Shown one piece after another: positions 11,346-39,811 of a stretch of DNA of 64,000 nt. Made by a program: the position numbers and the translations under genes. The DNA is from Utricularia gibba (lineage: Eukaryota; Plantae; Magnoliophyta), in assembly GCA_002189035.1 (NCBI GenBank), contig CM007992.1, positions 1,550,001 to 1,614,000 on the forward strand, in the 5' to 3' direction. The notes below the pieces were generated by a model. It saw only the letters and a list, made by a program, of their open reading frames with translations. It ran no database searches and was not told the origin of the DNA. Each line of letters opens with the position of its first letter. The first letter of the stretch is position 1.

Positions 11346-12222
11346 GGATAGTTTCAATAGAGGTGGGCAAGAATATGGATCAATTCGTTGACTCGGCGAG
11401 TTGATTGGTGACTCGTACTCATGCGAAAATAAGTATGAGTCGCTAAATTAGCTTATTTTTTAATAAAAAAATATTTTAGATTAATGTAATGATTCATTAA
11501 TTTTTTTATCAAGTCTAATTATTATACCCAAGTTCTAACCAACAAAAGATAGTACCGTGACTTTGACACTAATTTTTCAAATCTCAAATCTAGGATTTAA
11601 AAAAGTTTTGATTTTATCATTTTCTTCATGTTTGCAATAGTATTTTTAAACTGATTTCTTCTGCCATTTTATTGTTTTTCACTACTTGTGACTTTTTATC
11701 TTAATTCTTTGCATTTTTATTTATGTATAATTTTTGTAGATGGTTGAATCCTTGAACCCTTCTGTCCCACAGTTACATGATTAAAGCATTGATGTTATGC
11801 CATAGAAATGGAGGATGAATGTATTAGCGATGCCGAATGAGCTTCTTCAATCTAGAACAAGGGCAAATCATCTTTGCTAGATTGACATGATCATTTCATG
11901 TATGACATGAACATATATTCTGCATAAGTATGTTTTGTGAATAATTTTTCTTTTTTTACATCAAGTATTTTAATTTGATTAATTGATTTTAATTCTGTTG
12001 CTTGCTGTACATAAATCGAGTCAAGGATCAACTTGTGACGGGTTGGACTCGACAAGTCCAATTACTCACCTTTGACTCATCTAACTTGACCTGAACTCGT
12101 ACGAGTTGGACCCATGCCCACCTCTAATTTTCAATCAAGGGGTTACTCTCACTAGTGGATTCCATGAACAATGGCACCAACCATGAGTGGGGTGATATCT
12201 TTGTATGCCAACATTTAAATTG
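11346..12222 (+). pseudogene. Small GDSL esterase/lipase relic split by the hAT element
   Basis: GGATAGTTTCAA + TCAAGGGGTTACTCTCACTAGTGGATTC...GAGTGGGGTGATAT.TTTGTA.GCCAACATTTAAATTG matches the GDSL relics at 20185-20235 and 30715-30816 (reverse complement). Confidence 0.7.
11358..12126. mobile_element. Non-autonomous hAT element/MITE, 769 bp
   Basis: Perfect 12-bp TIR TAGAGGTGGGCA...TGCCCACCTCTA. 8-bp TSD AGTTTCAA (11350-11357) / ATTTTCAA (12127-12134). The empty site is preserved in paralogous sequence at 30778-30816 (reverse complement). Confidence 0.9.
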
Positions 12223-14821: not shown

Positions 14822-15811
14822 TAGAAAGCTATTTGACCATGCCACTCAAACTTCATTATATAAAAATTCGATACAATCATAATTAAATTCTTTTGTTTCA
14901 TAAATTGTTCATGCAATCAGTTATTTGTTTTTTTTACTAATTTAAAATAAATTTAAATCTTTTACACTTATGCTTCTCATGATACCATCCGAATTTATAT
15001 TTTAATCCTAGAATATTTTTAAATGTATGAATTAGAGATTATGAATTGTATTTACATGCAAGAAATTGATGTAAACACAATTATTTGCCTCCTTAATTTT
15101 TTATATTATCCTACCCGATAATTATACACGTGTCCTAATAAAAAGTTAGCCTGATGTTTTTTAGAAATCCTCTTCTAGTGCAAAACACCCAAGTTTCCTT
15201 GTTGATGACTATAGATTATTCGTTCGCTGGCTGATTATTACCTTCTCCTTTCCTCGGCAAACGCAAAGAACCTAACCTAACCGAGAAGTGCGTTGCTAAA
15301 ACGAAGGATCTATTGGCATGGCTGATCTAAAAATCACCAGAAGTGCGTGCGTTTCTGGTTATGTTTTTGTATGTGTGTGTGTGTGTGTTAATTGGCGCAT
15401 TTCTTGGGGCGTTTTTATGGGGTGTGAGTTGGAAACGAGGGAATGGGCGGGCGACAGTGTAGAGAAGGGAAATGAGTGAAAACCTATGTGGTGTGTATGG
15501 CTATGCTTGCTTATTGATTAGGACTGGATTATCATAATGTGGCACTCCTTGTCACCTGGACCCCCCAGAATCTAACTTGGTTTTCACACATTATATATAT
15601 ACCTTGTGTGGATTAATCAACTTTATGAAGAAGTGAAATCATCTTGGAACAACAGCAGATCATCTCAGGTCATCATTATTTATGGACACATGGAAAAACA
15701 TGACAAAGAAGGGATAGTTCCAACAATCTAGCAATAAACAACATAGAACAATAGAACAAGACGGCTTTATTTAAGTTTCGTGAAAATTACTAGTTCATGG
15801 GATGGTCTTCA

Positions 15812-18332
15812 CTAGTTCATGAAGACAGATCTTTTCATGCTCCACGAACTCAGCTTTTGGATTCTCACTGATTCAGTACCGTTGTTGAAAACGTACAAGT
15901 GTGACTCTTCAAAAATTGCTAAGGTTGGATACACACGAGATGTTATCACAGTCTTTCCTCCAGATGCAAAGCTCTCCACAACTGAGTGATCAATCTATTG
16001 AAGATAATGACAAATGCACCATCAAAAAAAGATGAAATAATGATAATAGATTTGCACCAAAAAATGAGATGACATTGTACCAAGCTCCTAAGGGAAAGAC
16101 TCTTGTACTTCAAGTCCACATTTACAAATCCTCCGAAAGATGGTCGATATGCATCGCTTCCTCCATCCATTTGTGATTTTCCACTCACCAATGTGGATCT
16201 AGAAGCATTAAACAATGAGACCTACAAAATAATTGACATATAATATATAATTCAAGGATTAATAGATGTTGAGAGTACCTTGTAGCATCTGAACATAATA
16301 GAACTAAATATTGATTTTGATCCTTGAAAATCCTGAAGAATACTGGAGTGTATTCTTCCAGTTTCTCAGAAGCTAGAGTAATAAGACCAAATGGTCCTAA
16401 TGTTCCTTGAACACTTGAGTCTCTCTCCCCACAAATCTTTTGTGGATCATGTATATCCCATCTTGGATCCAGAGGTTCAGCCTTGTCCAAATTATCAAAA
16501 GTAAAGGTGACATCAACATCAACTTGGGCGGGAGTGATGCCATGAATCTCAATTTGTTGTCCACTATGAAGATCTTTGTTGTTCAATTCCACCTTGTTTT
16601 TCCTTAGTGTTTCCACTTCCTTAATAGGCCATTGAATAAGTTGTCTCCCATTCGGATCCAGAACCAATGTTCGAGGAATCAACTGAAAAAAAAAAAAAAT
16701 CAATTAGCATATGAATTTAAATACAAAAGAACTAGTTAATTAGGTACCTGTATACCGGCCCATCCCTTCTTAACATCATTTTCAGTAGTATCTGATTCAT
16801 TTGCCCATCCCCACAAAATTCTTCGTTGCTTGCTAAGATCATAAAAAGATTTTGAAGCATAAAAGTTTCCATAATCATACCTCAATCCATGCCACCCATC
16901 AATCAAATCCTCATCTGGAATATATTTATCCAAATCACGATGATATGTCCCAATGGTGTAATACTCATACCTCGTAACATCAAGACTTACCTTCATCACA
17001 TGCTTCACATTTTCCCCAAAAGCTGAAGTATCAAGTCCATTTCTTGTGGTAACAGAAACAGGGAAGAAATCTGGGCACTCAAAATTGCCGGTTCCAGACA
17101 CAGAATGCAATGGATGCTTCGCCTTGATCCATTGCTTGAAGTCTTTGCTCCGGTAAAGGAACGTCATTCCCCTATGCTTACGCCGACCACCAATGACAAT
17201 TCTCCAGTGGCCATCATGACCGAACCATGCTGTAGTTGGATCACGAAAAGCGGTCTTGTTGATGGATTCATCCGACACGATCAATGGATTATCATTGGGC
17301 TTTATCCATTCTCGAAGATAAGGATCTGAAAGATTAGCTGGAACAGCATAGTTTTGCACCTGAGTATTGTTTTCATCAACAATCCCAGTATAAAGAATGA
17401 CCGGCTTATTTCCAGGGAGAACAGTTGCAGAGCCGGACCAACAGCCATAATTATCAAATGACTTTGATGGATAAATGGCTGGTTCAAGTTTGATCCAGTT
17501 GATCAAGTCTTTCGAAACTGAATGAGCCCAGACGATGTTACCCCAAACCGCTCCTTTTGGATTGTATTGGTAGAAGAGATGATAAAATCCGTTGTAATAC
17601 ATTGGACCTGTTATTATTTAAAAAATGATCAAACTATTGAATAAACTGGAAAATATGCCAAAAGGTTAAAAGGAACGAACACTCACCATTGGGATCTGAT
17701 TTTGTTTCCATTTTCCCAGGATCGTCATGTGGAGAAACAAAAGCATGAGCCCATTAGTTCATAAACCAAACTTCCATCAACAAAAAAGTAAAATAGCAGA
17801 ATGAAAGAACACATGGGGTACGGTTTTAAGACACAACTGGAAAAGGGGAAAAATGTTGCCTTTTAGGGAGGAAAGGAGGAAATGGTATCAGAATCCAAAA
17901 AAAAAAAAAAAAAAAAATGCATGCATGCAATGAAATTGCCAAGTCATTGCTTATTCGGACTGGTTCAGAATAAAATAAAAATGGCGTGTGTTTAATAGGG
18001 GGAAGGATGCCTCATTAATGCGGAGTGATGCCCTCGTGTGTGGTGTGTTCAGATTCTGGATAAGAATTGAGGTTTTCCAAAACAACAATATCTTCACAAA
18101 ACTCATGCAGAAAGCGAAGCTAAAACATGAATTTGGTACCGTTAATCCAATGTCTTGAGGGTTGAAAATGGTATGCTGTCCGGTGCTCCTGCTTCACATT
18201 AGCGGCTACGACAGATTGCAGATTGGTGAATACATTGTGTGCCCCATGGACGCCATCTACGCTGAGCATCGCCAAAAAACACAGGGCCAAAACAAGGAAA
18301 TCCCATCTCCTACCAGAAACTAGAAGCGCCAT
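15812..18332 (-). CDS. CWINV: Cell-wall (extracellular) acid invertase, GH32, copy B; 6 exons, 588 aa. Exons 18332-18140, 17695-17687, 17607-16748, 16682-16279, 16198-16081, 15994-15812
   Basis: Signal-peptide-like N-terminus. WINDPNG built with the 9-nt mini-exon, FRDP, ECPDF (P = cell-wall type), SLDVTRY (Asp239/Arg242-equivalent pair), IDHSVVESF. All introns GT-AG and frames join without stops. Confidence 0.95.
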
Positions 18333-18405
18333 GAGTGGGAGGACGAATAAACCAGAAGCTAACCAGAAGAATAAGGCTGAGTTTGGATGCTGTGAATCTG
18401 AAGAG

Positions 18406-18413
18406 TATTTATA
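18406..18413 (-). promoter_or_regulatory. TATA box of invertase copy B
   Basis: TATAAATA on the minus strand, ~75 bp upstream of the ATG; identical in copy C. Confidence 0.75.
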
Positions 18414-19799
18414 AGGGAAGAAGAGAGAGGGGCTTTGGGTTTGAAAAGAGGGTAGAATCTGTTAAGAGTCAAATGAATAAATTTGCTGTTAGCGGAAATC
18501 TCTCGTTCATTTGAATGAGTAAGGCATCTTTATCTTGACTTATGAATCAGCAAATATTAACTTATTAGAAGATATGTCAGTTAATAAGGTTAAAAATGGG
18601 GAAACTCCTGTTTCATCTCAACAACTTGGAGGAATTTTTGTTGGTCTTTAACTAACGCTACAGATTTAAGGGGCCCTTTGGCTTTGGCAACCGAATGAGA
18701 TCCTTCGGATGGTCTCATCTTGGCGAATCCTTCGTCTGGCCTGACCCAGTTACCTGAAGGCTGGGCAGTCGCTGAACCAGTTACCACCAAAAAAGAGTTG
18801 GTCAATAAAACTAATATCATTTTTTTCGCCCTTGATTTGTGCCTGTGTTTGTTTGTTTCTTTTTTTTGTTTTTTTTTTTGAGCACGTGTTGATCGCCACC
18901 GTCATGTCCTGAGACAATTTGGTGATGGCAAATTCAACCAGGCGACACGGCCGCGATGCACGTCCCTGGAAAAACAAGGTACGACTGATGATGATGATGA
19001 TGATGATGAGTCGCTCACTGAAACCGATCCAGAACTGTGGTACAGCTTCCAGTGCAATTTGAAGGTCGAATACTACACCCATTGAAAACGTCGATTGAGT
19101 AGGCTGGATGGATTCCAGCACGCCATCAATTGCCAGAATCATGTTCTCTGCACATGTCGCTGATTTGGTTCTACCATCCATCATCTATAGCACAAGGTTA
19201 AGGACTCTTTAGAACCCCAGTTGCCAAATTTTCAGCTCTGTGAAGCGTCTTCCTCCTGCAATCAATCCCTTGCAATGCATCCCACAGCCCGCCCACCCTT
19301 GTATTTTCAGCTCTGTGAAGCGTCTTCCTCTCTGCATTGTGGATGAGCCCCCGTAGGAAGGGCGCTGCATTAGTTGGGTAGTTGGTGTAGGCGTCCCCAA
19401 GGAAAAGAGACGGTCACCGTGTCATTATCTGCATTTAGTTTTGGAGTTCCGATGCATTTACTGCAACATCTCGCCCTCTCATTCACGAGGCTGACTCTCG
19501 CATACCAAGAAGACACCGCAGGCGCCCGGAGATATCTCATCCCCCATGGGACTTCACTAGGCCGGGAACAGCGCCCTCGTAGTGTACCCTTGTTCGTTCC
19601 CGTTAATGTAATATTGTAGCTTGATCTCTAGGGTATCAGGATCAGCTGGATCCTGGATTCGGGTCATCCAGACCCGACTCGGCTGACTGTGGCAGTTAGC
19701 ACCATGTGTGTGGAATATTGTCCAAGCTTACTTTGGCAGTTTGTTTATTCTTCCATTCAATTCCGGTGATAAGCGGAATTCATGCCATCAATTCTTCAC

Positions 19800-20400
19800 A
19801 TGTGCATGTTTGGGGCTTCCGGGGCCGCTTGCTTCCTTCAATCCTGCTACAACCGGATCATCTCGAATCCTCGCTCGACAAAACCGGTCGGCACCATGTA
19901 AGAATCTGACAGTTTGCTTACTAACCGAAAAGATGTAATCAGCTCCTTTGTGCGAAGAGGAAAGGCATTCTCTGTGCCGGCCACCGGTGAGCTTAGAGGC
20001 AACTCTAAGCCAACTGGGGAAAACGATGAACGGAGAAAATCTCGCGGCGTCTGTGTCGAACGCCATCTTGGTTCTTGTTTCCGGCGGCAAGGACTACATC
20101 AACAAGTTCTACATCGCCCATCGCCGGCGACGGTCCCCTGGGCTGCATCTATAATCAGTTGGTCTCGTGGCAGGAGTCTACTAAGGGATAGTTTCAACCA
20201 GGGGTGATATTTTTGTACGCCAACATTTAAATTGCGATGGGCGAGGTGCTGAACAATCCGGCGAGATAAGGGTTCTCGGTGGTTGACAGAGCGTACTGTG
20301 GGTTGGGGCAGAACCAGGCGCCGAGGGCGTACGCCGGAACGCCTTCAGAGTCTCACCCATGAATGTGCAGCAGCAGCTGGGTGTTATCAAGTTCAAGCTT
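19800..20400 (+). pseudogene. GDSL esterase/lipase pseudogene (downstream exons), left arm
   Basis: Fragments ACLGLPGPLASFNPATTG, LDKTGRHH, VSNAILVLVSGGKDYINKFY (block III GxNDY-like) and EVLNNPAR*GFSVVDRAYCGLGQNQ. Stops and frameshifts. Confidence 0.8.
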
Positions 20401-20497
20401 CCGTGAGTGTAACTGCGATTAAATCCGAAAATTTTGGATTGACGAAACATGTTTTTATGCCAACCACATTTTTCATCTCAGCGCGGGAAAAACGAAG

Positions 20498-20534
20498 TTA
20501 TTTAATTTTAGGACATAGGTAAAACTTGGGGTCT
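20498..20534 (-). pseudogene. PTD: Duplicated tail of PTD (11 codons + stop: DPKFYLCPKIK*)
   Basis: Reverse complement matches 30409-30445 ([11 protein letters not shown]) with 2 substitutions. Homology ends abruptly at 20534, where AT-rich transposon-like sequence begins. Confidence 0.8.
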
Positions 20535-23500
20535 ATCAACAATATATAATTACATATATGATCTAAAAATTATGAATTTAGAATATAACGGATATTTAAA
20601 CTTTCATAATGAGGCATAACGGTCCTATAAAGTTTTGTGAATGGGTATATTTGACCCATAAGTTTGATGAATTGATATATTTGATTTTCGGATTTTTTTT
20701 ACTGTAGAACACATCTATTTAATAATGATAGATTTAATCCGATAAAATTTCGATTTTAACATATTTGACCTACATAAGTGAACCCGGTTCAATAATAATA
20801 AAATTTTATTAATATATATTTAATTATTAATATCTATTTAATTATTAAAATATTTAAAAAAATTTACTTCCGATATTTGACCCTAAATCGAATTGGGGAT
20901 GACCCTATTCTTCATCTACAGGTAAAGGTGAACTACCGAGAGATCGAGAGAAGTGATTCCCACACAAGAGAAAGGTGTGAAGTTGCTCTCGATTATCATT
21001 CTCTTAAGGTATGGCTTTCGTGATTTTTTTCGCTTCATTGCATTATTGCATTTGCTTCTTATTCGCCTGGTTGCTATTGTTGAAATTTTATGCAAAAATC
21101 AGTTGGTTTGTGAATGATAGTTTTCCTCGTAGTGTTCACTACACCCTTATCATATTGTGCAATCTTGGAGAAATATCTGTTAGAGATCAGCCTCAATCCA
21201 AAACTTGAAGGTGATTGGAAACACTAATCTTGTGTTATAAAGTCATGTTTCAGTTAAAAAGTGTTGGATTTGATTTGTTGGGCTTTTTGTGTGTTTTTAA
21301 TTATTGTGGCCCACTATTGGATAATCTAAGTATTGGTTATATATAAACCCTACTAGGAACACGTGTGAATTAGGTTTTTGGTCATTTTTATTGTTCATGA
21401 GTCGTTTTTTATCCAAGGCGATCTTATATGAATTATTCATTTGTTCCTTCCAAAAACTCTATCTTTCTTGCATCATCATGATATCGGAGCAGTAAAGTTC
21501 TCAAACCTATGTTCATTTCAGTATTTTATTTACCGTTCAGCCTTTTTCACTTAGTGGTTTGCCAAGTATCAACGCGAAGCTTGTCAAACGGTGGCTATGA
21601 TGGCATCTGGTAGGGGGCCTCCGATATTTGATGGTTTTGAGTATGGAAGTTGGGTCAAAAAGATGCATAGGTACCTTCGAGTCAAAAAGATTTGGGATAT
21701 TGTTGAAAGGGAGATACTAGCTATTACACTAACAAGCAAATCTACATCAGAACAGAAAGAGGAAGCTAAGTATCTTCAATAGAGAAAAGATGAAACAATG
21801 GATACCTTATATCAAGCCATTTCTGAATATCTGTTAGATGATATTGTAGAGTGTCAATCAACGAAAGAAATATAGAATACTCTCAAATCCCATTATGATG
21901 GTGATGTCATATTTAGAGAGATAATACGCAAAAACAAGATGGAGGACTTTGAGAGGAACAAATTGTTAGACAATGAAACTATACAAGTCTATTATGAAAG
22001 TACTACGGAGCTTGTGAAGGAGATTCGAGGATTGGGGGAAAAACTTGAGGATAAAAAGGTGATTAGCACGGTAATTATGAGCCTACCTGCAAGATTCGAG
22101 CCAAAGTTATGTGCACTTGAGACAGAAAGAAAAATCTTTGACATTATTGAAGGAAGGCTTCATCAGTTGTATCCTGAATATCTTCTTACACCAGAGCCAA
22201 TATTTAGAGAGTTCATGATTGAGTAGTAATCTACATAAAAGAGATTGGAACTAAGAGATGGTTGTGAGCTTGAGAAAACTTATGGTGAAGCTGCTCTCCT
22301 CACCAAAATGCAGAATATGAATATAAACTCAGGTGCAACTAACAATGTCAAGGATGTCAAGTCAATAGTCATCAAACAATCACCAACGTCAATCCCAACT
22401 TCAACCATGGGTAATCAGAAGTGCAGACATTGTGATAAATCTAACCACAAGAGTGAAGATTATTGGACTTTAAGCACAAATACTTGCAAGCATGGCAATC
22501 AACAGAAACACAAGAGTGAGTTTTGTTGGTAGAAGTCTTATGCTTTGTGCACGAAATGCAATCAAAGAGGCCATCTTGACAACGTCAAATCCAATCAAAA
22601 TTGATCATAACAAGAAGACTACTTCCAAGGATGAAAAATCATATGCATACTTTACCTACTTTGAAGACGAGTCAGAGATATCTTTTGAAGATTCTTGTGA
22701 TTATGAGTGTGCTCTAATAACATTAATCTCAGATGCTAAAGGGTGGTACTTGGATTTTGGCACCTCCTATTATGTATGTTGTGATACAAGATCATTTCTC
22801 TAACTTGAAAAAATTGGGAAGGAGGTAAGCACGTGCAGTGGTGAAAATATTCGCATTGTGGGAAAAGGAAGTATTTTACTCATGCTAAAAGAAAGAATTG
22901 TTCAAGTTGATGATGTTTATTATTCACCAAACCTCAAACAGAACCTATTGAGGTTTGGCCAATTGAGCAGGCAAGGTTTTGACATTGAGCTAATGAAGGA
23001 TGCTGATGGTATAACCACTAAAGTTAAACTTGCTGATCCAAAAACGAAGATTGAATTCCATGTTGTGTTGACCAACTATAACTTCTACCAAATCATGGTT
23101 AGTGATCATAAAATTTGTATTTTCTCACTTCAGGATCAAAGCAACCTTTGGCATAAACGTTTTGAGCACTATAGCTTTAACAATATGAAAATATTGCAGA
23201 AGAATAAGGAAGTACTGGAATTGAAAAATATCAAGTTTGCTGATACCAAATGTGAAGTGTGCCATCAAGGTAAACAGTGTAGAAAACCATTTCATTCGAG
23301 TGATTTAGTAGCAAAGGAGAAATTAGAACTTATGCATACAAATTTTTGTGGACTATTTAAGAAATGTTCATGGGGGGGGGGGGGGGAGGGGAGAGTAGAT
23401 ATTTTGTTACATTCATTGATGATCATTAACACTATTGTTGGGTTTACTTTCTTAAAAACAAATCAAAAGTTCCTCATATCTTTCGAAAATTCAAAATGAT

Positions 23501-26500
23501 GACTTATAATCAGAGTGGATGCTCCTTAAAGATGATTAGGTCAGACAATGGAGGTGAAAATGAGGGAATCATTCATCAATTCACAATATCATATTCTCCA
23601 CAATAGAGTGGTATATGTGAAAGGAGAAACAAAGCAATTCTTGATATGTCAAGATGCCTATTGTTTAAGAAAGATCTTCCTGTAAATTTCTGGGCTAAAT
23701 CAATATCTACATTTGTATATCTTTTAAACTTGCTTCCTTCTAGGGTAATTAGTGAAAAAACCGCCCATGAAAAATGATATGATTATATTAAAAAAGTTGA
23801 TCATTTCAGAATCTTTGGTAGTTTGTGTTTTACTCATGTACCAGACCAAAAACAAGGAAAACTTGATAAGAAATCTGTATGTGATGTATTTGTTGGTTAT
23901 AGCAACACTACCAAAGGATATAAAGTTTATATACCTGACCAGAAGAAATTCATCTTTAGTCATGATATCTCTTTTGATGAAAGTGCAAAGTACACTTTGA
24001 TTAAAGATTACATTTCTGTAAATGATGCAGAAGCTCATAAAAATCTTGGAGGGCATAACACTCACGTGAAATTTGACCTTTGGATACACATACCTCAAAA
24101 CATCTCTTCCAGGGACTCAACAAACCAAGAAACTAAAGATGGAATTAAAAATATACAGGTGAATGAGAACTCAAAATCAACTTTGGAACTCTTCCATGAA
24201 GATTCAAATCAAGTAAATGATCAATATTCAGATGAGAATTTCCCACCTCCAAAAGAGGAGAAGGTTGCAAATGAAGACGACTCATCTGATGAGAATTCAA
24301 AATCAATCTTAGAACCCTTATATGAACAATCACATTAGGCCAATGATCAATATTCAGATGGGAATTTTGAAGTCCTAGAAGAGTAGCAAGGCACGAATGC
24401 AGAAGACTTATCAATAGATGAATCTGATGGAGAGGAACCTGATACTAATGATGAAGATTATTACCCATCTGATCGTGATTGGCAAGGAAACGAAAAAAAG
24501 ATCAGAGATTCAATAGATAATGAAGATAGTCATGTTACTGAAATAAGACGAAGCAAAAGAAACAAGACTCCTACAATAAGTTTCTCCAAGTTGAATGATG
24601 ATGTTCAAGATGTTGTAGCTGATATTTTGGCTGGATTATTGACAGGAGATCCAACATCATTTGAAGTGGCTGTACAAAATCCAAAATGGGGAGATGCCAT
24701 GGAGGAGGAAATGAATTCTACACTTAAAATGAAACATGGGAGTTAGTTGATAAACCCAAGGATAGGAGTTTCAAACCTATTGGTCTCAAGTGGTTATTCA
24801 AAACCAACATGAATACGGATGGTTTTGTTAACAAATATAAGGTTAGATTAGTAGCCAAGAGATATAGTCAGATCAAAGGAATAAATTTTCATGAGATTTT
24901 TGCACCAGTAGCAAGATTTGATATGATTAAAGTAATTCTTGCCATTTCAGCTGCTCATGGATAGAAAGTGCATCATATGGATGTGAAGACTGCGTTTTTG
25001 AATGGTGTGTTGGAGGAGGTTGTTTATGTTGAACAATCAAAGGGCTTTGAAGTGTCAGGTCATGAAGGCAAAGTATTGAAGCTAAATAAATCTATCTATG
25101 GGTTGAAGAAAGCTCTTAGAACATGGAATGAATGCATGGATAACTTTCTCCAGGGTATTGGTTTCAGAAAAACATATAGTGATTGCTCACTATATGTTAA
25201 AGAAAAGGGAGATGATCGTTTATTTGTTAGCCTATGTGTGGATGATCTTATGATTATCTTAGGTGATGAAAGGAAGATTAAAGAATTCAAAGCTCTACTC
25301 AAAAATGAATTCAAGATGACTGACTTTGGAATGATGTCCTACAATCTTGGCATAGAAATTCATCAACTTGCAAATGTTAGAACATTCATATCTCAGAAGA
25401 AGTACTGTAATTAACTTCTTGAAAGGTTTGGGTTCAAAGATGTCAATCCTTCAAAAACCCTCTTGGATTACAAACAAGTGATTGGAGAAAACAACTAGGG
25501 AAGGAATGTGGATGCTACTACTTATAGAAGTATGGTTGGAAGCCTCATATATCTCTAGCATACAAGGCCTGATTTGTGTTTTTGTGTAAATGTCTTATCT
25601 CACTTCCTCAACAAACCAACAACAACTCACATGATAGCTGTTAAAAGAGCTTTTAGATATATAAAATCTACTAATAATTTCGGATTGTTCTATCCCTATG
25701 AAGGTGAAAAACCAGTCTTGAAACTTAGAGCCTACTCATATAGTGATTATGGTATGGCTAAAGATAGCAAGAGTATATCTGGTGCATACTTCTTCTTAAA
25801 TAAGAACCCTATAATTTGGTTTTCGAAGAAACAAAAGGTGGTAACACAGTCAACAGCTGAAGCATAATACATCTCAGCAGCACATGCTTTGAACTATTAT
25901 GTTTGGTTGAGACAGATGTTAAACGAACTTGGATTCATACAAAAGGAAGCTACATATCTGCTTTTGGATAATCGAGCTGCAATCTCCATTGCCAAGGATC
26001 CAGCAAACTTCAACAAAGCCAAACACATAAGAATAAGGTATCATGTCATAAGGAATTACATCAAGGAAAAGAAGATCAAAGTGCAGTATGTTGAGAGTGG
26101 TAATCAGCTTGCTGATGGGCTTACCAAAGGTTTGAATAGAATTCAATTTGAGCTAACAAGGAAGAACATGAATCTCATGACTATGGAAGACTTTCTCAAG
26201 TTGGGAGATCTCGATCTAGAGGGGAGTGTTAGAGATCAGCCTCAATCTAAAACTTGAAGGTGATTGAAATCACTAATCTTGTGTCATAAAGTCATGTTTC
26301 AGTTAAAAGTGTTGGATTTGAATTGTTGGGCTTTTGTGTGTTTTTAATGATTGTGGTCCACTATTGGATAACTTAGGTATTAGGTATATATAAACCCTAC
26401 TAGGAACACGTGTGAATTAGGTTTTTGGTCATTCTTATTGTTCATGAGTCTTTTTTCATCTAATGCGATCTTATAAGAATTATCTTTTTGTTCTTTTCCA

Positions 26501-27500
26501 AGACTCTATCTTTCTTGCATTAACAATACCAATGATGTATCATCGTCTTGGATTCGATCCATAATATGTTAACTCATATAACAAGTAACCTTTGAAAGTA
26601 AGTAGTGTGTTTTAATATCTTGTGTTATATTGTTTTTTATTATTAATCTGTATTAATCTTTTTGTTATGCATGATTTATAGATTAGTGGACTCTATTTTT
26701 AAAGTTAATGGTTGGGATGATGATTGTGTGAAGTAGCTTGAGTTGCCTATTTTTTGGCCAGAGGTTAGTATGACTTTGTTGATATTATTTTTTTTTCTTT
26801 ATTTTAACGTTGATCAACATATAGGTCCCTAAGCAAAAGGGTACAATTGAATGTGAGATTTATGTGTTATACAATATGTATCTCTTCCTCCAACAAGCTC
26901 ACGACCTTTACACTATTGAAACACACCCTTTGTTTGTTAGTAATTTTCAAAATTTGTTGGTTATTTATTAGTCGTTACTAAATACTATTATATTTCTATA
27001 GATGGTACAAGATTGGTTCGTTAAAGAAGATGTTCGTGAATTTGCAGAATTAATGGAGATTCCTCATCGATCTAGGAGCGGCCGAGTAAGCAAACCTTTC
27101 AAAAAAATGTAGACATTGAACTTGTTTGTTGATATGAGCTTGTAGACTTTGTTATTTGTCTTTGACACTATTTATACATTATGTTTGATTCTTTAAATTT
27201 TTAAACAAACATTATACGGACAATCATAATATGCTTATGATTTCTCTAATTATAAATACATCTAATAACATTATACGGACAATCTATTTATTTGAATACT
27301 TATTATTATCATTCTAATTACATCTAATAAAAAATATATACAAGTATGTAGAAGGGCATAGAAAATACCATATAGGACCCATGCCCCTATAGAGGATGAC
27401 ACACGGGCATGGAGGGTGGCATACGGGTGTGGGCTACGCATATGGAGGGTGGCATACGGGCGTGGGTTATAGCAACCCACGTCTGTGTGTCATGCCGTGT
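20535..27500. mobile_element. Possible degraded DNA-transposon host sequence flanking the Copia (20535-21177 and 26531-~27500)
   Basis: Subterminal-like motifs (GGGTATATTTGACCC, repeated ATATTTGA), spliced-looking coding scraps at ~26690-27090 and short tandem repeats at 27187-27290 and 27405-27470. No paired TIR or TSD found. Confidence 0.3.
21178..26525 (+). mobile_element. Full-length but degenerate Ty1/Copia LTR retrotransposon (5348 bp); Ivana/Oryco-like by size and gag (inference)
   Basis: 5' LTR 21178-21478 and 3' LTR 26227-26525 (TGTTAGAGATCAGCC...CA). PBS TGATATCGGAGC (degenerate tRNA-iMet PBS) at 21479. PPT AGAGGGGAG before the 3' LTR. TSD ATATC/ATACC. gag PPIFDG, GAG-pre-integrase LWHKRFEH..CEVC, RT HHMDVKTAFLNG and CVDDL, RNase H ADGLTKGL; many stops. 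Confidence 0.95.
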
Positions 27501-28941
27501 GGAGTTTCCTAAATTGTATTATTGGATAATAGATGGACTTTTTTTTCCTAAACGATTTTGACAACTTAAAATGTATTGTTTGTAATTTCAAAATCAAAGA
27601 ATTATACTATTTATACTAATTAAAACTTAAATTATACTATTTATAAATTTTTATGTCGCATGTTAATAAGGTAAACAAAAAACAGAAAATAGAAGTTATA
27701 ATAATGACTTCCCAATCAAAACAACTTGATTGATATTAATAAAAATTACGTACAACCAAATATTAATATATTATAAAATTATTAAAATAGAAATAAAAGC
27801 AACATTAAAAAAGTGAAATTGCTGCCTAGCTTGATGACAGTTTCTACCAATTAGGAGGGTATGTGATTGAATAGATCAATCTATATTTGAATTTGATAAA
27901 ACATAATCCTCCTTTTCTTCACCTCAAATGAGACTTGTCAACACTATTAAATTTTGAAATGAAAACGAATTGTTCATGCATTGTGCGGGATGCTTTTTAC
28001 CCTCCCCACAGCGATGAGTATGTGGTCAATCTTGATTAAGCACCAATAATAAATCAATAGTGGATCTCATGCCCTCATTTCTACAAATTATTTGGTGTAA
28101 AATTGTTAACTTTGAAAAGTATATTATCTAAATTCATATAACTAGTTGGTTTAAAAAAGATCCTCAAAATAGGATTAAAAATGGTTTTATTAATCCACTT
28201 GTATCTATTTTATACATACAAATCAAATGCGCCTTGAGGGCTTAATTTTTTATAAAAAATGAATGATAAAATCAAATGGTGGGAAGAATCAACGACATAC
28301 CAATGCAGGATGGTGTATCAAACTATTCAATATTGCCGACTTATCACCCCTGGAAAAAGCCCAAGTGAAATGGAGGAGTATTTCTATTCAGAGGCAGCAA
28401 ATGACCCGTTAGCACATAAGCTTCTTAACGATTTTCCTCAAGTATTATCAAGGCCATATAAAGGGTCTATCACCAGCAGTCAGTGTTCGGAGCAAAAATA
28501 AAAGTTATTTTATTTAAAGTCATTCAATCTATTTTTAATTTAGTTATATGTTTAAATTAACTAAGTATTTTAACTCCGGTTAAACACATATAAAACACTA
28601 CATCCATAAATCACGGGCTTGTCGTCGATATTCACATAATCTCCATGCCTCTGTCATTTGTCGCCGAGAGGTTCTCAACCGCACTCCACATTTTCAGAAC
28701 ACTTTGAGACCCAGTCGTCGGGATTCATTACCGATAACGGGATAGGTTCTTGCTGCTGCTGGATCTGTTGGTTGGATCGTGTCATTTGGTAAGATTTTAT
28801 TGCAGAATATTAGAGGCTTGATGTCGTTGCACTAGGCAAGACTGTGAGTATGAACCTTTGCTGCCGTTATATGGTTTTCTGATGTTCCCGTCTCTGTTTC
28901 TAAAGATCAAAATCAGCGTCGGTTGCCGCTCGACTGAGAGA

Positions 28942-30445
28942 ATGAACGTTGCGCAAGAGTCTAGAGAATCTACGCCGTCGAATATTTCCAATTCAGGTAA
29001 ATCGGCTGAACGAAACCAGTTTCTCGGTAGGCTTGCGTGGTGTTCGATTTGTTTGTTGTTCCGATCAGTTATCAGATGCTTTTATTGAACTTAGGCATCT
29101 AGGTTTCTATTTGCTTGTTCGATTACGGTGCTAAGATAGATATCTGCGTGGCTGAGATCTGTGATGTCTTGTTCCGTAATTCACATGCATGAATAGACAA
29201 AGAGGCTTCATGCGAATATGTTTGATGAATTTGCGTGTGTATACATTGAAACAAGAGTTAAGTCTGGGCTGGAAACCGAGTAGTTATACCGGTTGATGCT
29301 ATTCAAAGGTCGTTTAGTATTTGAATCTTACATCCGTTGCAGGATTCTCTGGTGTCTGTATCATGAGCACCTCGTGGAAGGAAGCCCAACATTCATCTTT
29401 TATCAAGTTTATCTCTGCTTTTCTCGGCGCGAATTCTTACAGATTGAAATTCATGCCAATAGCTCCAGTTCTTTCTTTCCCCTCCTTCTTCTATTTAAAT
29501 TTGTAATATCAGTGCCTTATAGTATCTATCTGCAGGACTTCATTTTCAATTGTGGCGGGCTTTCTGTGGCCTTCGTGTTTGTCACTACTTGGAACTCTAC
29601 GGAAACTGCCTCCATCTTCAGCAGGTAACCGATGATCACTGTTTAAACTCCTTTCGCTTTCTTATCCACTTAGTTGAGCCTATGCAGAATCCAGAAATTG
29701 ACTGGACAATTTGCTCATTTGTACGTCGTTGTGACGCTGCCTTCGAAGGATCAAAATGAGAGTTTTGTGCACGCTTATTTCAAGTAAGTAGTTAAACTGA
29801 AAGTAAATCCTTCTGTTTCCTTCTGTGGTGTGGAGTTGAATTGAACGTATCCTCGTTCAAGATATGGGTTCGAGCTTGGCAAGCCATCTTTCATTCCTGT
29901 GCTAGACCTGGAAATGGGGTTCGAGAAGATTGTCAAAATAGCACATGCACGTGGAGGTACAATTAAGCATTTCATCTCTAACGGAATCTTACCTAAAACT
30001 TGATTGTCATTTCTAACTACCAACTCCATGACAGTCTGCAAGAAGCAAGATGCTATAGCCAAATTGAGAGCTGAGGTGCGTTTCAGTAATCACGGTACGT
30101 TTTACTGGTTTCTGGCTGCTGAATTACTTGCGAATATATGATTTTAGAGGACGACTTCGGTGCAATCCATGGAAATATACAAGAAAGTGGTGACATCAAT
30201 TCCAGGGATTGACAGCCATGACGCCAATACAGTATGTAAACCACTCTTACTTTTTCACGTCTCATTTTCACCAATCTCATATTCATTCCTTGCAGCTACA
30301 GCAAGCCATTGGCTCCATAGAAGCAGTTGCAAAAGCGTCCAAGAACCACATATTAGATAACACTGATCTCTCAGCGGAAAAAGCAGAAACCATTACCAGG
30401 TTCTTCAGAGACCCCAAGTTTTACCTCGGTCCTAAAATTAAATAA
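28942..30445 (+). CDS. PTD: PARTING DANCERS homolog (ERCC1-like partner of SHOC1, class I meiotic crossover); 8 coding exons, 244 aa. Exons 28942-28996, 29343-29467, 29536-29624, 29688-29783, 29862-29956, 30035-30075, 30148-30231, 30296-30445
   Basis: Spliced product contains [87 protein letters not shown] and [10 protein letters not shown], closely matching Arabidopsis PTD as I recall it. GT-AG junctions keep frame (735 nt). A probable 5'-UTR exon ends near 28790. Confidence 0.92.
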
Positions 30446-30539
30446 CTTTCGTTCCTCCCGCGCTGAGATGAAAAATGTGGTTGACGTAAGAACATGTTTC
30501 ATCAATCCAAAATTTTCGGATTTGATCGCAGTTACACTC

Positions 30540-31230
30540 ACGGAAGCTTGAACTTGATAACAACCAGCTGCTGCTGCACATTCATGGGTGAGACTCCGAA
30601 GGCGTTCCGGCTTACGCCCTCTGCGCTAAGATAAGAACATGTTTCATCAATCCACAGCACGCTCTGTCAACACCGAGAACCCGTATCTTGCCAGATTGTT
30701 CAGCACCTCGCCCATGGCAATTTAAATGTTGGCGTACAAAAATATCACCCCACTCACGGGTGTTGCCGTTGACCGTCGAATCCACTAGTGAGAGTAACCC
30801 CTGGTTGAAACTATCCCCCTTAGCTGACTCCTGCCGCGAGACCAACTGGTTATGGATGCAGCCTAGGGGACCGACGCCGGCGATGTAGAACTTGCTGAGG
30901 CTATCTGACGGGGTGTAACGTGTGAGAAGAAGATTGCAGGATAGACGTTGAGGAGGAGGTAGTTGTTAATTTAGTCCTTGCTGCCGGGCCCGGAGACGAG
31001 ATCCAAGATGGTGTTCGACACATACTCCACGGGATTTGCTCCGTTCATCATTTCCCCGAGTTGGCTAGAGTTGCCTCTATATGCGCCGCTGGCCGAGCAC
31101 AGAGAATGCCTTTCCTCTCTACGTACAAGGGTGCTGATTACATCATTTTCGGTTAGCCAGTAAAGTGTCAGATTCTTACATGCTGCCGACCGGTTTTGTC
31201 GAGGATGCCTCCTGTGGCGGAACTCCACCG
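30540..31230 (-). pseudogene. GDSL esterase/lipase pseudogene (downstream exons), right arm, tail-to-tail with PTD
   Basis: Minus strand gives SSATGGILDKTGRQH (block II region), FNQGLLSLVD, EVLNNLARYGFS and VDRACCGL, with frameshifts. Confidence 0.8.
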
Positions 31231-31518
31231 AGGAGTTCTTATCTCACGGGAATGGAATGGAAGAATAAACAAACGTAAGTGCCAAAGTAACCGACGAAGG
31301 CGCTGCAGTGGCCAATCTCGGACATAACCTTTGACAATTTTTCGGTGCTAACTGCTTCCGTGGACCAGAGTCGGGTCTCGAAAGACCCGAATCCAGGATC
31401 CAACTATTCCGATACCTAGAGATCAAGCTACTGGATTAAATAAACGGGAACAAACAAGGGTAGCTCAAGATACACTACTAGGGCGCTGCTCCCTGCGTAG
31501 TCAAGTCCCATGGGAGAT

Positions 31519-32152
31519 GTATAGCCCAGATTTGTAAATTACCAAAAAAATAAGTTGTTTTTTGCATTTTACCCTACCTTATGATTTTTTCGTTTTTGAA
31601 TGTTTTTTTTTTTTTTGGATTTATAATTTAGGGGTTCAATTTTAAAGTTTAATATTTAGTATTTATAACTTAAGAATATTATATATTAAGTTTTCATAAT
31701 TTTATGATTAATTTTTGTGATTATTTAGAGTTTAGGGTTTAAGATTTCACAATTTTTTAAAATTACTGATTTAGGGTTTAAGATTTTAATTGGGATTTAA
31801 TTTTTTTGGTTTCAGATTTAAATTTTAGAGTTTAAGGTTTAAATTTTAGAACTTGATATTTAGTTTTGTGATTTAAGATTTAAGGGTTTAAGATTTCGAA
31901 TTTAAATTTTAGATTTGAAGTTAGATTTTAGGTTTTAGACTATGAAATTTTTAAATTTCAGATTTCGTATTATGATTTAAGTAAAGATTAAGTTTTATAT
32001 ATTTTTATTTTTATGATTTAATTTATAACTTAAATCTTACTATAAAGTATTTTACAAATGGTAGACAAACATAAGGTAATTATCAAAGAAAATTTACAAG
32101 TAGGGTAAAATGCAAATATAATGCAATTCACAAACGTAAAACGTGGAGGCAG
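31519..32152. mobile_element. AT-rich MITE/Mutator-like insertion present only in the right-arm invertase promoter
   Basis: The left arm reads straight through this site (…CCCATGGGGGATGAGATATCTCCGGGCGCC…). The insert has imperfect TIRs (TTTGCATTTTACCCTAC / GTAGGGTAAAATGCAAA) and internal TTTAGGGTTT-like repeats. No clear TSD. Confidence 0.7.
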
Positions 32153-33178
32153 CTCCGGGCGCCGGCGGTGTCTTGGTATGCGAGAATTAGCCTCGTGAAT
32201 GAGAGGGTGAGATGTTGCAGTAAATGCATCGGAACTCCAAAACTAAATGCAGATAATGACACGGTGACCGTCTGCCTACACTAGCTACCTAACTTATGCA
32301 GCGCCCTTCCCACGGGGGCTCAAGCTCATGCACAATGCAGAGAGGAAGAGGCTTCACAGAGCTGAAAAATTGGCAACTGGTTTCCTAGAAGTCCTTAACC
32401 TTAGTGGCAATTGAAAACTTAGAAACTGGGGTTCTAAAAAGTCCTCAAAATTCAGCTATAGATGATGGATGATAGAACCAAATCAGCGACATACGCAGAG
32501 AACATTATACGGGCAATCCACGTTTTAGGGAGCTATCACTTCTCTTTCAATGGAGTATAGTATTCGACCTCGAAATTGCGCTGGAAGATGTACCACAGTT
32601 CCGGTTCGGTTTCAGATCATCGGCTGCTGGTTCCCAGCCTCCAGGGGCGTGCATCGCGGGCGTGTCACCTGGTTGACCCAAGCCTTCTTGAATTTCCAAT
32701 CGCCAGATTGTCTCCGGTGGCTATCAGCATGTGCTCAAAAAAATGGAAACAAATACACACGTGCAAATAGGAAAATATGGGATTTTGATATGCCCGAAAA
32801 AAATAAAATGATATTTGACTAACACCTGGTAACAAACTCGCTAAGCTACTGCCCAAACTTCAGGTAGCTGGGTCAGGCAAGACGTAAGACCAAGATGAGA
32901 TCACCCGAAAAAGTATCTCATTTTGGTTACGAAGGGGCGATAAAATCTCTATCATTAGTTAAACATCAAAACTAAAATTCTAATCTCATATTTAATCTTT
33001 TAATTGATACATTTCTAGTAATTTAATATTTACTGATTCATCCACGGGATCTGATCCAAATCAAAATAAAGATACATATTTTTTATTACTTATTCAAATA
33101 AACACGTTTGTTGATAGATTTCCTTAACAACAAATTTAACTGTTAATCCCCTCTAAACCCAAGATTTCTTTATTCCCT

Positions 33179-33186
33179 TATAAATA
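33179..33186 (+). promoter_or_regulatory. TATA box of invertase copy C
   Basis: TATAAATA ~75 bp upstream of the ATG at 33260. Confidence 0.75.
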
Positions 33187-33259
33187 CTCTTCAGATTCAC
33201 AGCATCCAAACTCAGCCTTATTCTTCTGGTTAGCTTCTGGTTTATTCGTCCTCCCACTC

Positions 33260-35781
33260 ATGGCGCTTCTAGTTTCTGGTAGGAGATGGGATTTCCTTGT
33301 TTTGGCCCTGTGTTTTTTGGCGATGCTCAGCGTAGATGGCGTCCATGGGGCACACAATGTATTCACCAATCTGCAATCTGTCGTAGCCGCTAATGTGAAG
33401 CAGGAGCACCGGACAGCATACCATTTTCAACCCTCAAGACATTGGATTAACGGTACCAAATTCATGTTTTAGCTTCGCTTTCTGCATGAGTTTTGTGAAG
33501 ATATTGTTGTTTTGGAAAACCTCAATTCTTATCCAGAATCTGAACACACCACACACGAGGGCATCACTCCGCATTAATGAGGCATCCTTCCCCCTATTAA
33601 ACACACGCCATTTTTATTTTATTCTGAACCAGTCCGAATAAGCAATGACTTGGCAATTTCATTGCATGCATGCATTTTTTTTTTTTTTTTTTTTGGATTC
33701 TGATACCATTTCCTCCTTTCCTCCCTAAAAGGCAACATTTTTCCCCTTTTCCAGTTGTGTCTTAAAACCGTACCCCATGTGTTCTTTCATTCTGCTATTT
33801 TACTTTTTTGTTGATGGAAGTTTGGTTTATGAACTAATGGGCTCATGCTTTTGTTTCTCCACATGACGATCCTGGGAAAATGGAAACAAAATCAGATCCC
33901 AATGGTGAGTGTTCGTTCCTTTTAACCTTTTGGCATATTTTCCAGTTTATTCAATAGTTTGATCATTTTTTAAATAATAACAGGTCCAATGTATTACAAC
34001 GGATTTTATCATCTCTTCTACCAATACAATCCAAAAGGAGCGGTTTGGGGTAACATCGTCTGGGCTCATTCAGTTTCGAAAGACTTGATCAACTGGATCA
34101 AACTTGAACCAGCCATTTATCCATCAAAGTCATTTGATAATTATGGCTGTTGGTCCGGCTCTGCAACTGTTCTCCCTGGAAATAAGCCGGTCATTCTTTA
34201 TACTGGGATTGTTGATGAAAACAATACTCAGGTGCAAAACTATGCTGTTCCAGCTAATCTTTCAGATCCTTATCTTCGAGAATGGATAAAGCCCAATGAT
34301 AATCCATTGATCGTGTCGGATGAATCCATCAACAAGACCGCTTTTCGTGATCCAACTACAGCATGGTTCGGTCATGATGGCCACTGGAGAATTGTCATTG
34401 GTGGTCGGCGTAAGCATAGGGGAATGACGTTCCTTTACCGGAGCAAAGACTTCAAGCAATGGATCAAGGCGAAGCATCCATTGCATTCTGTGTCTGGAAC
34501 CGGCAATTTTGAGTGCCCAGATTTCTTCCCTGTTTCTGTTACCACAAGAAATGGACTTGATACTTCAGCTTTTGGGGAAAATGTGAAGCATGTGATGAAG
34601 GTAAGTCTTGATGTTACGAGGTATGAGTATTACACCATTGGGACATATCATCGTGATTTGGATAAATATATTCCAGATGAGGATTTGATTGATGGGTGGC
34701 ATGGATTGAGGTATGATTATGGAAACTTTTATGCTTCAAAATCTTTTTATGATCTTAGCAAGCAACGAAGAATTTTGTGGGGATGGGCAAATGAATCAGA
34801 TACTACTGAAAATGATGTTAAGAAGGGATGGGCCGGTATACAGGTACCTAATTAACTAGTTCTTTTGTATTTAAATTCATATGCTAATTGATTTTTTTTT
34901 TTTTTCAGTTGATTCCTCGAACATTGGTTCTGGATCCGAATGGGAGACAACTTATTCAATGGCCTATTAAGGAAGTGGAAACACTAAGGAAAAACAAGGT
35001 GGAATTGAACAACAAAGATCTTCATAGTGGACAACAAATTGAGATTCATGGCATCACTCCCGCCCAAGTTGATGTTGATGTCACCTTTACTTTTGATAAT
35101 TTGGACAAGGCTGAACCTCTGGATCCAAGATGGGATATACATGATCCACAAAAGATTTGTGGGGAGAGAGACTCAAGTGTTCAAGGAACATTAGGACCAT
35201 TTGGTCTTATTACTCTAGCTTCTGAGAAACTGGAAGAATACACTCCAGTGTTCTTCAGGATTTTCAAGGATCAAAATCAATATTTAGTTCACTTATGTTC
35301 AGATGCTTCAAGGTACTCTTAACATCTATTAATATTTGAAATATACATTACATGTCAATTATTTCGTAGGTCTTATTGTTTAACGTTTGTAGATCCACAT
35401 TGTTGAGTGGAAAATCACAAATGGATGGAGGAAGTGATGCATATCGACCATCTTTCGGAGGATTTGTGAATGTGGACTTGAAGGACAAGAGTCTTTCCCT
35501 TAGGAGCTTGGTAAAATGCCATCTCATCTCTTTGCCACAAATCCATTATCATTATTTCATTTTTTTGATGGTGCATTTGTCATTATTTTAAACAGATTGA
35601 TCACTCCGTCGTGGAGAGCTTTGCATCCGGAGGAAAGACTGTGATAACATCTCGTGTGTATCCAAGCCTAGCAATTTTTGAAGAGGCACACTTGTATGTT
35701 TTCAATAATGGTACTGTACCAGTGAGAATCCAGAAGCTGAGTTCGTGGAGCATGAAAAGGCCTGTCTACATGAACCAGTGA
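33260..35781 (+). CDS. CWINV: Cell-wall acid invertase, GH32, copy C; 6 exons, 589 aa. Exons 33260-33452, 33896-33904, 33984-34843, 34909-35312, 35393-35510, 35596-35781
   Basis: Same motifs as copy B (NDPNG via the 9-nt mini-exon ATCCCAATG, FRDP, FECPDF, SLDVTRY). The 1770-nt spliced CDS is in frame and all introns are GT-AG. Confidence 0.95.
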
Positions 35782-38244
35782 AGATATCTCATGTACAAAA
35801 CCTGGATTTTGCTGCTGCTGCTTTTTGGTGAATTCTTTTATTTCTAGTAGCTTGTCAATAATTTTCATGAAACGTAAATAAGTTCATCTGGTTTGATTGT
35901 TCTACGTTTTTTATTGTTAGATTTTTGGGACTATCCATTCTTTCTGATGTTTTTCGATGTTCCATAAAAAATGATAACCTAAGATGATCCGCACCTTCTG
36001 TTGTTGTTCCAAGATGATTTCATTTCTTCATAAAGTTCCTTAATCTTACCAAGGTATAACATCTTATAACCAAGTTCAGATTCTGGGGGAACTAACTGCC
36101 CAGGTAACAAGGAATGCCACATTGTGGTGCTACAACTGAGACATATTCAATAACTACCTTTAATCCAGTCCTAATTAGCATCCATCCACTCAAATATATT
36201 TGTTTATAAACGGAGACAAGTTTTGAATTGTTGACTATCCATCATTCCTTGTTTCTTCATTAAAAGTAAGTATGTACCCATTTCGTACTCACCAACAACC
36301 CATGAAAAAAAAAAATAGCACCTTATATTGGCTTCCAATATTTGTTTTTTTTTTCATAATTTTTCTTAGATGATGTTACATTGAAAAGAAGCGAATAATT
36401 AATATTTGGCCATTTGATTCATCCTCTCCAAAAATACAATTCACAACCAATGGAGGACAATGAGCGACACTTAACAGCAATTTATGAAGTCCTTTGCGTG
36501 GGTATTTACATCACGTGGATGGCTTGTGATGAATTTTGCTGGAGCTCTACCATTATAAACAAAAATAGTACAAAAAACTTTAAACAAAAATGGTACAAAA
36601 GATATATATAATATCTTTTGGCTAATTTATATCTTTAAACTTTAAATTCCTTAACATTTTTAATATTTTTTCTATCATCCCTAAAACTAACGTCTCCCAC
36701 CACAGCCCCACATTGACCATCCCTAAGCAAAGCACAAAGGTTTAACAATTCTCCCTTCACGCTCATTGGTAAGTGTTTTTTTTAAGAACTATCCAATGCA
36801 TGTAATTTTCTCTTTTTCCTTTGTCTTGATTAGAAGACAATTGACAAAAAGAAATATTAGGAAGAAGAGTATTAACTTGATTGATGATGACAAGAACTTG
36901 TGTGGAGAATATGGTAACAATAACAATCCAATAAATTCCAATAAGGCAGCAATTAAGCAAGTTGGACAATGAAGGAAGAATTATTTCTGATATCGGTATA
37001 TTATATGATTATATCAAATGGATGGAAGATTTAAAATATATTTTATTTAGAGAATCTAAAACAGTTTGTATTATTTTAAACTTATTAAATTATTATGGAA
37101 TAAATAGGAATACTTCAAATTGTATGATTGATGGTACATCATAAAACTCACAAGAAATAATTCAGGTACCACCAATTTTTATATTAGTATTTTGATGTCG
37201 TAACATTATTGAATGATAGAAATAATTGTATTTTTTTCAATGTTTATTATACATATTGTTGTTGTTGTTATTTGGTTTTATCTAGAATACTCCAAAATTG
37301 ACAAACCATTTCCATTATTTCAGGATTGGGAAGAAATATTTAGAAGAGATCTGAGAATTTGCATTTGAATGCAATAAATTTGTTGAAGATGTTCATAAAG
37401 GTGATAAGGATAATCCATCTTTTGATCTTAGAGTGTAATCTATATGACTTATTTTACAACTTATGATTTAAAGTAAAAGTAAAAGTAAATATTTTATACA
37501 ATATCTCTAATTGTTTTAAAACTTAACTTCTATTTCTAATTATTCATAACTTATTTCAATTTTAACTATTTTAGCAACTTATCACATAAGTTGATAAAAT
37601 ATGACTTATTCAATAAATGTAACTTGTACAATAACTTCTACTTATAAATTAAGTAGAAGTTGATGATTCAGTCACACAGACTATACCCTTAGTGATATCT
37701 TATATAGCTTTTCATCAAAAACTAAGTTGTAGATTGAATCTCTCAAAAATGCTGAATGAGCAGTGCAAATGGCAAAAATGATTGATGTTACACTTGAATT
37801 AATAAACAGACTTGGATGATAGAAAAACATGATCAAGTGGCTGATATTATCTTCCATGGGGCCGCCAGTTATCAAAGAATTCTCAACTTGATGAGGTTTT
37901 TGCAAAACTTTAGCTTTGTGCCATGCTCTTGACCTAAACTTCAACCTCGTTTTGATACCAAATGTAGATTGTAGTGCAGCGAGAGTCTTACAACTTCGCA
38001 CCGCATCATCACTTTTTTGAGCAATAGCTCTCCTATTTATATTACAACATAGAATGCTTTAGATAATTTTTCGTTGACTATTTTTAGATAATTCTTTGAT
38101 ATTCTATTTTCTTCTAGATTCTTTTTTAAGTAAAATTTACCACCATATTTTAGAATATTCTAATTATTTAATCAAGTTTTGCATCATCTTCTAGAATATT
38201 TTAATCTCTGCCTTAATTGGATTGGTTTTTACTTCGTTGGGCAC

Positions 38245-38443
38245 TTGTCATAATCAATGCCGGAGGGGTAGTAATTGGATCTCGAAATTGAGTGGGTGAA
38301 ATGGCTGGTGGTTTGTTCCCTTTATCAACTGCTGAGTCGCCAAACACGAACACTGCCGTCGCCTGAGGTAGCGCACGACAGACTTCTCCGACGGCGACGG
38401 CAGGAATATCCATTGGTACAAGAAGTAACAACGTGCTGGCCAT
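38245..38443 (-). pseudogene. Isolated, frameshifted exon 1 of a GDSL esterase/lipase
   Basis: MASTLLLLVP...ATAVFVFGDSAVDKGN (block I FVFGDS), then after a frameshift RSNYYPSGIDY..PT (cf. NY.PYGIDF..PTGRF). No following exons nearby. Confidence 0.8.

Positions 38444-38587: not shown

Positions 38588-39811
<1,224 letters not shown>

Follow-up and report, generated by a model that had tools for sequence, protein, structure and literature searches.

How can two copies of a gene be identical over 2.1 kb, introns included, when the sequence on either side of the identical tract has drifted far apart? This question is raised by a pair of predicted invertase genes in a 64,000-nucleotide stretch of the Utricularia gibba genome (GenBank assembly GCA_002189035.1, contig CM007992.1, positions 1,550,001 to 1,614,000 of the forward strand), referred to here as the window, whose first letter is position 1 of all coordinates given below. 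The left gene (15812-18332, minus strand) and the right gene (33260-35781, plus strand) stand head-to-head about 14.7 kb apart and are transcribed away from one another. Outside the tract, the two arms in which they lie are about 9-20% diverged, with a Kimura two-parameter distance (K2P) of 0.13-0.21 at non-coding sites. We consider it highly probable that a recent, DNA-templated, non-allelic gene conversion within an invertase cluster explains the tract, and we infer the mechanism, age and recurrence of conversion from the comparisons that follow.

Direct comparison of the reverse complement of positions 16342-18419 (left copy, minus strand, 2078 nt) with positions 33173-35249 (right copy, plus strand, 2077 nt) yields 502 identical bases, a poly-T run of 21 versus 20 residues, and a further 1555 identical bases. 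The poly-T run, located in intron 1 (20 T at 33675-33694 on the plus strand in the right copy; 21 T at 17897-17917 in the left), is thus the sole difference within the tract, precisely as had been proposed in the original prediction, which was made by reading the sequence alone. A repeat search of the window recovered the pair as well, with the poly-T dividing it into two inverted repeats. The edges of the tract are equally sharp. In a gapped alignment of the flanks, the nearest upstream mismatch falls at 33172/18420, which places the start of identity 6 bp upstream of the TATAAATA box (the TATA box; 33179-33186 on the plus strand in the right copy, 18413-18406 in the left), in agreement with the earlier reading. 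At the other end, the first mismatch beyond the tract is 35250 G/16341 A, a synonymous change in Val codon 468, which had likewise been named as the end of the tract and is so in the window.

The tract spans the core promoter, the 5' untranslated region (UTR), exons 1-3, introns 1-3 and most of exon 4, and it includes the entire catalytic N-terminal domain of the invertase, such that codons 1-467 are the same in both copies. Its non-coding part amounts to 674 bp, comprising 587 bp of introns (intron 1, earlier put at about 440 bp, measures 443 bp) and 87 bp of core promoter and 5' UTR, all of which is identical. None of the 302 synonymous sites in the tract is changed, versus a synonymous divergence (Ks) of 0.18 outside it.

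The contrast with the neighbouring sequence can be followed along the arms. The 470 bp of proximal promoter show a K2P of 0.21 and 24 gap events, and the final 100 bp upstream of the tract carry 16% mismatches and 8 gap events; the tract itself follows with 0 differences in 2077 positions. Beyond it, K2P stands at 0.155 in intron 4, 0.132 in intron 5, 0.092 in exon 6 and 0.174 in the 3' flank, the last with 7 gap events, and the description of the promoters and 3' flanks as riddled with indels is therefore accurate. The unconverted 3' part of the genes (35250-35781 on the plus strand in the right copy, 16341-15812 in the left) contains 45 mismatches in 531 aligned sites (8.5%). The remainder of exon 4 together with exon 5 accounts for eight differences, one more than the approximate seven of the original count, while the 16 differences given for exon 6 were found exactly. 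Across codons 468-589 there are 12 synonymous and 11 non-synonymous codon differences, and for this unconverted coding part Ks is 0.18 and the non-synonymous divergence (Ka) 0.038. The resulting Ka/Ks of 0.21 implies that both invertase genes are under purifying selection.

Were the tract to have diverged at the rates of its neighbours, about 177 differences would be expected (approximately 88 non-coding, 48 synonymous and 41 non-synonymous), and none is seen. The 4702 ungapped columns of the arm alignment contain 399 differences, and the longest identical run, with the poly-T indel counted as a break, measures 1574 columns. When the 399 differences were permuted 20,000 times over the 4702 columns, the longest run averaged 73 and never exceeded 179 columns, so that no permutation reached the observed value; an analytic bound on the chance occurrence of such a run lies at about 1e-68. 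A chance origin of the identical run is excluded.

The arms themselves were delimited by BLAST of the two sides of the window against each other. The left arm extends over 15562-20534 (minus strand, 5.0 kb) and the right arm over 30409-36089 (plus strand, 5.7 kb), with 9.9 kb of unique spacer (20535-30408) between them. Their non-coding K2P of 0.13-0.21, together with the Ks of 0.18, bears out the view that the inverted duplication is old. In contrast, the 95% bound on tract divergence since the event is below 0.0015 (0 of 2077), which is less than 2% of the divergence between the long terminal repeats (LTRs) of a Copia element in the spacer and about 1% of that between the arms. A generic plant rate is about 7e-9 substitutions per site per year, a figure which may not be that of this lineage. 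At this generic rate, the duplication would date back roughly 10 million years and the conversion would be younger than about 0.1 million years.

The course of such an event may be envisaged as follows. Very recently, a double-strand break or gap would have arisen in one invertase copy and would have been repaired by homologous recombination, with a paralogous copy serving as DNA template. The segment overwritten in that repair would measure about 2.1 kb and extend from immediately before the TATA box into the middle of exon 4. At the 5' end of the tract, alignable homology gives way to the indel-rich promoter, and heteroduplex extension may have been rejected there. The 3' end lies within well-aligned sequence of about 91% identity, and its position is probably stochastic.

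Whether both copies and their boundaries exist beyond the assembly was examined in four sequencing runs from four studies (X1, X4, X6 and X8), which were placed on positions 32300-36500 as Logan contigs; differences were taken among the variants listed for each contig, and Logan contigs drop rare variants. In X1, a right-copy promoter contig shows no differences at a depth of 4.6, and the left-copy junction appears as a 255-nt loose end at 33173, the last 30 nt of which match the left upstream sequence (contig depth 7.2). A 1498-nt contig within the tract, also without differences, has a depth of 22, about four times that of these unique flanks (4.6-7.2). On the 3' side, X1 provides right-type contigs with no differences (depth 5.2-5.9) as well as left-type variants. 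X4 contains tract contigs of 482 nt and 1229 nt without differences, and both 3' types are present. Both junctions are thus seen in independent contigs and the depth of the tract is not that of a single copy, which speaks in favour of the original prediction on the matter of whether two copies exist. The remaining two runs derive from more diverged material, at an apparent 2-6%: X6 holds two forms 6% apart at 34141-34309 and one mosaic 3' contig, while the 3' end in X8, an RNA run, is of the right type.

These contigs also reveal more than the two copies of the window. Both X1 and X4 contain a third junction on the 5' side, at 33170, as well as a 3' end of a third type, and the window has neither sequence. 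Combined with the roughly fourfold depth, this indicates that at least one further copy carries the tract. Moreover, a third class of contigs, marked by variants at 35163 and 35241, departs from the tract at an earlier point; tract ends thus differ between copies. Among the variants listed, all X1 contigs have A at position 35250 and all X4 contigs have G, while in the window the left copy has A and the right copy G. In both runs, the left and right types fork only at 35291, 41 bp past the 3' boundary of the window; identity there ends at 35290 and not at 35249. The boundary therefore shifts across samples, an outcome that the original prediction had regarded as a sign of recurrent conversion. 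The pattern looks like a polymorphism common to the paralogs together with a boundary that moved by 41 bp between samples, as read from low-depth contigs, and such a shared polymorphism and shifted boundary are what recurrent conversion predicts. The A/G difference within the window could itself be a polymorphism shared between paralogs or an error of the assembly consensus.

Because the tract is common to at least one copy outside the window, its sharing amounts to concerted evolution in a small invertase cluster, and this is probably recurrent. A more far-reaching proposal, which we regard as rather doubtful, is that conversion is recurrent and ongoing in a cluster of inverted pairs with at least three invertase copies; it would keep the core promoter and catalytic domain identical across the copies and leave the upstream regulatory DNA, like the C-terminal 122 codons, to diverge, with the shared polymorphism at 35250 and the shifting tract ends as its marks.

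As a refinement of the main explanation, the same observations raise the possibility that a third invertase copy served as donor for one or both of the left and right copies; it would lie beyond the window or on another haplotype. The excess depth of the tract in X1, the third junction and 3' end in X1 and X4, and the contigs that leave the tract early are all consistent with such a donor, which we consider conceivable, if on the unlikely side. However, the left and right copies, 14.7 kb apart, are the closest pair known, and conversion frequency drops with distance (PMC2277409). The extra junctions could, furthermore, be alternative haplotypes. Of the recent arm-to-arm conversion originally put forward, the recent DNA-templated homogenisation stands, with 0 of 2077 positions changed and introns included; the arm-to-arm component is unproven, given that at least one further copy shares the tract and could have been the donor to both.

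An artefact of assembly or polishing, whereby the copies truly differ and multi-mapping reads rendered their consensus identical, seems to us quite improbable. The tract does exceed the length of short reads, the 20/21 difference in the poly-T is typical of consensus noise, and position 35250 in the window is at odds with both read sets. Against this, stretches of 1.2-1.5 kb of the tract are unbranched in the X1 and X4 contigs, without differences and at multi-copy depth, and both sets fork at 33170-33173 (as loose ends), which is the 5' boundary of the window, and at 35291 (where contigs begin 30 letters earlier). Nor would polishing yield, at each of the two ends, a drop from 100% to 84-91% identity from one base to the next. 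Its effect could be no more than the masking of a few differences, which would leave a young conversion tract in place.

Finally, purifying selection on the catalytic domain, although the whole of that domain lies in the tract, is excluded because the 674 non-coding bases of the tract are identical, versus 12-14% difference in introns 4 and 5 just past it, and its synonymous sites are unchanged, and an mRNA-templated (retro) event fails on the identical introns and TATA box, which exclude a spliced RNA template as the original prediction had argued, so that we give either of these explanations practically no credence.

Several points nonetheless weigh against recent gene conversion as the explanation. 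No contig runs from one unique flank to the other across a whole copy, and the copies are unphased; a few real differences in the tract could have been missed by the contigs or polished away. No GC enrichment of the tract was found, the GC content at third codon positions being 0.38 inside versus 0.40-0.43 outside, and there is therefore no sign of long-term GC-biased conversion. Outgroup comparison has limited reach: the best matches to the exon-3 open reading frame (ORF) come from Rehmannia, Sesamum and Penstemon, with about 80% protein identity at most; the 90% cluster of this ORF contained two proteins, both from Rehmannia, and their loci (L002 and L003), the nearest available, are only about 76% identical in the DNA of exon 3 and hence too distant for an intron-level comparison or one of phylogenetic incongruence. 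An exact look-up of the exon-3 ORF returned one 1229-nt Logan contig only, and the ORFs of the other exons were not in the collection.

The two genes in which this conversion would have taken place are predicted to be intact cell-wall-type invertases of family GH32. The left coding sequence (588 aa) comprises exons 18332-18140, 17695-17687, 17607-16748, 16682-16279, 16198-16081 and 15994-15812, and the right one (589 aa) exons 33260-33452, 33896-33904, 33984-34843, 34909-35312, 35393-35510 and 35596-35781. Both six-exon frames are intact and open, and the spliced frame of the left copy has GT..AG introns; this copy is one residue shorter since TAG takes the place of the final CAG. Exon 2 is a 9-nt mini-exon encoding DPN (33896-33904 in the right copy), which splits the NDPNG motif. 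Three splice joints, at 33452/33983 (enclosing the mini-exon), 34840/34906 and 35509/35595, are present in RNA contigs of X8, which thereby confirm the mini-exon as well as introns 3 and 5. In an X8 RNA contig across 33452-33983, from a source about 3% diverged, the mini-exon reads ATCCTAAT for ATCCCAAT, a synonymous change which suggests that the mini-exon is conserved and spliced there.

Segments of the right copy match the Pfam domains PF00251 (GH32 N-terminal; E-value 8e-87) and PF08244 (GH32 C-terminal; E-values 1e-6 and 8e-11, in exons 4 and 6). The best match among solved structures is Arabidopsis cell-wall invertase 1 (AtcwINV1; PDB 2AC1, E-value 6e-116), followed by chicory 1-FEH IIa (9e-105). 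The genes share with AtcwINV1 and plant GH32 cell-wall invertases the N- and C-terminal GH32 domains, the 9-nt DPN mini-exon, all three motifs of the catalytic triad (NDPNG, RDP and EC), and a Pro following EC, which is of the cell-wall type. Two departures from AtcwINV1 were noted. In alignment, SLDVTR stands here for SLDDTK, such that the equivalent of D239 is kept and that of K242 is Arg; the equivalents of W20, W47 and W82 are conserved, with residue numbers that we take to be those of the AtcwINV1 literature. The Asp239 equivalent distinguishes invertases from fructan exohydrolases. The second departure concerns the catalytic Glu (34510-34527), where both copies read NFECPDF instead of the usual MWECPDF, a Phe for Trp beside the acid/base catalyst; both carry it because the motif lies inside the tract.

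The spacer contains a decayed Ty1/Copia retrotransposon (21178-26520, plus strand) with gag-pre-integrase, SH3-like and RVT_2 matches and broken ORFs. Its LTRs (21178-21473 and 26227-26520) differ at 25 of 294 positions (K2P 0.091); a tRNA-Met-like primer site lies downstream of the 5' LTR and a purine tract upstream of the 3' LTR, and no clear target-site duplication of the element was found. The spacer also holds, at the edge of the right arm, a terminal ORF (30194-30442, plus strand) with weak helix-hairpin-helix matches below the Pfam cut-off, the last 34 bases of which enter that arm. Frame-broken GDSL-like pieces with a GPLGC motif lie upstream of the invertases in both arms (30615-30965, minus strand; 20030-20204, plus strand), and the old duplication unit therefore seems to include part of a GDSL gene. 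A further related piece is located near 12.1 kb (12129-12222), and to the right of the right invertase an ORF at 38213-38443 (minus strand) contains a GDSL-lipase block I motif (FVFGDSAVDKGN) and has no match in Pfam. The 2.1-kb inverted identity might permit a flip of the 14.7-kb spacer, whereby the two 3' gene ends would exchange their upstream regulatory regions. A role for the inverted identity in a read-through hairpin or in small interfering RNA was considered and dropped, since the two genes are transcribed away from each other.

Elsewhere in the window, a 71-nt inverted repeat (14544-14614/14751-14821; 99% complementary, with a 136-nt loop) looks like a miniature inverted-repeat transposable element or a hairpin. 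A chlorophyll a/b-binding protein gene has its last exon at 38591-38770 (minus strand), and a thaumatin-family ORF lies at 57373-58104 (plus strand; Pfam E-value 4e-82). A single-exon chloroplast DnaJ11-like gene of 136 aa lies at 49213-49620 (plus strand); its best matches, in Orobanche, Castilleja, Penstemon and Phtheirospermum, reach 56-63%, and an exact look-up of the protein did not find it in the collection. Together with the matches of the exon-3 ORF, they point to a plant of the core Lamiales.

The tract is long and unusually clean; the type of event is known, and it reveals no new mechanism. Its value lies in offering a clean case of concerted evolution in a plant sugar-metabolism cluster, with base-exact tract ends and a built-in neutral yardstick in the form of the introns and the Copia LTRs. 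It suggests that regulation and C-termini can stay specific to each copy even as the catalytic core is reset again and again, and it matters for the dating of duplicates by whole-gene Ks, for copy-specific markers and for knock-outs.

The locus had originally been likened to the palindromes of the mammalian Y chromosome. The arms of Y palindromes are near-identical over their whole length, from tens of kb to Mb. In both systems, a spacer separates inverted repeats that lie on one chromatid, and intrachromosomal conversion keeps the gene copies identical in the palindromes (reviewed in PMC3403216). Here, only about 40% of the 5.0- and 5.7-kb arms is identical, the remainder being 10-20% diverged with dozens of gap events, and the locus is without any sign of sex linkage or non-recombination. 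The likeness thus holds for the inverted arms and the 9.9-kb spacer, but not for near-identity along the whole arm, which is confined to 2.1 kb, and it serves as an analogy only.

A closer parallel is offered by conversion between linked plant paralogs, which is already well documented (PMC2277409, PMC6383267). In rice, GENECONV detected 377 events, which in coding sequence averaged 130 nt and reached 1237 nt at most, their frequency falling with distance (PMC2277409), and a survey of 141 plant genomes found conversion to be relatively abundant in tandem and proximal pairs (PMC6383267). In the literature on invertases and gene conversion, nothing specific was found. With the linked paralogs of rice and Arabidopsis, the invertase pair shares a contiguous, near-zero tract within older paralogs, partners that lie close together, and constraint on both genes. 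It differs from the rice coding tracts in its length of about 2.1 kb of genomic sequence, in its inclusion of a core promoter and three introns, and in the inverted, head-to-head arrangement of its partners; furthermore, more than two copies appear to share the tract.

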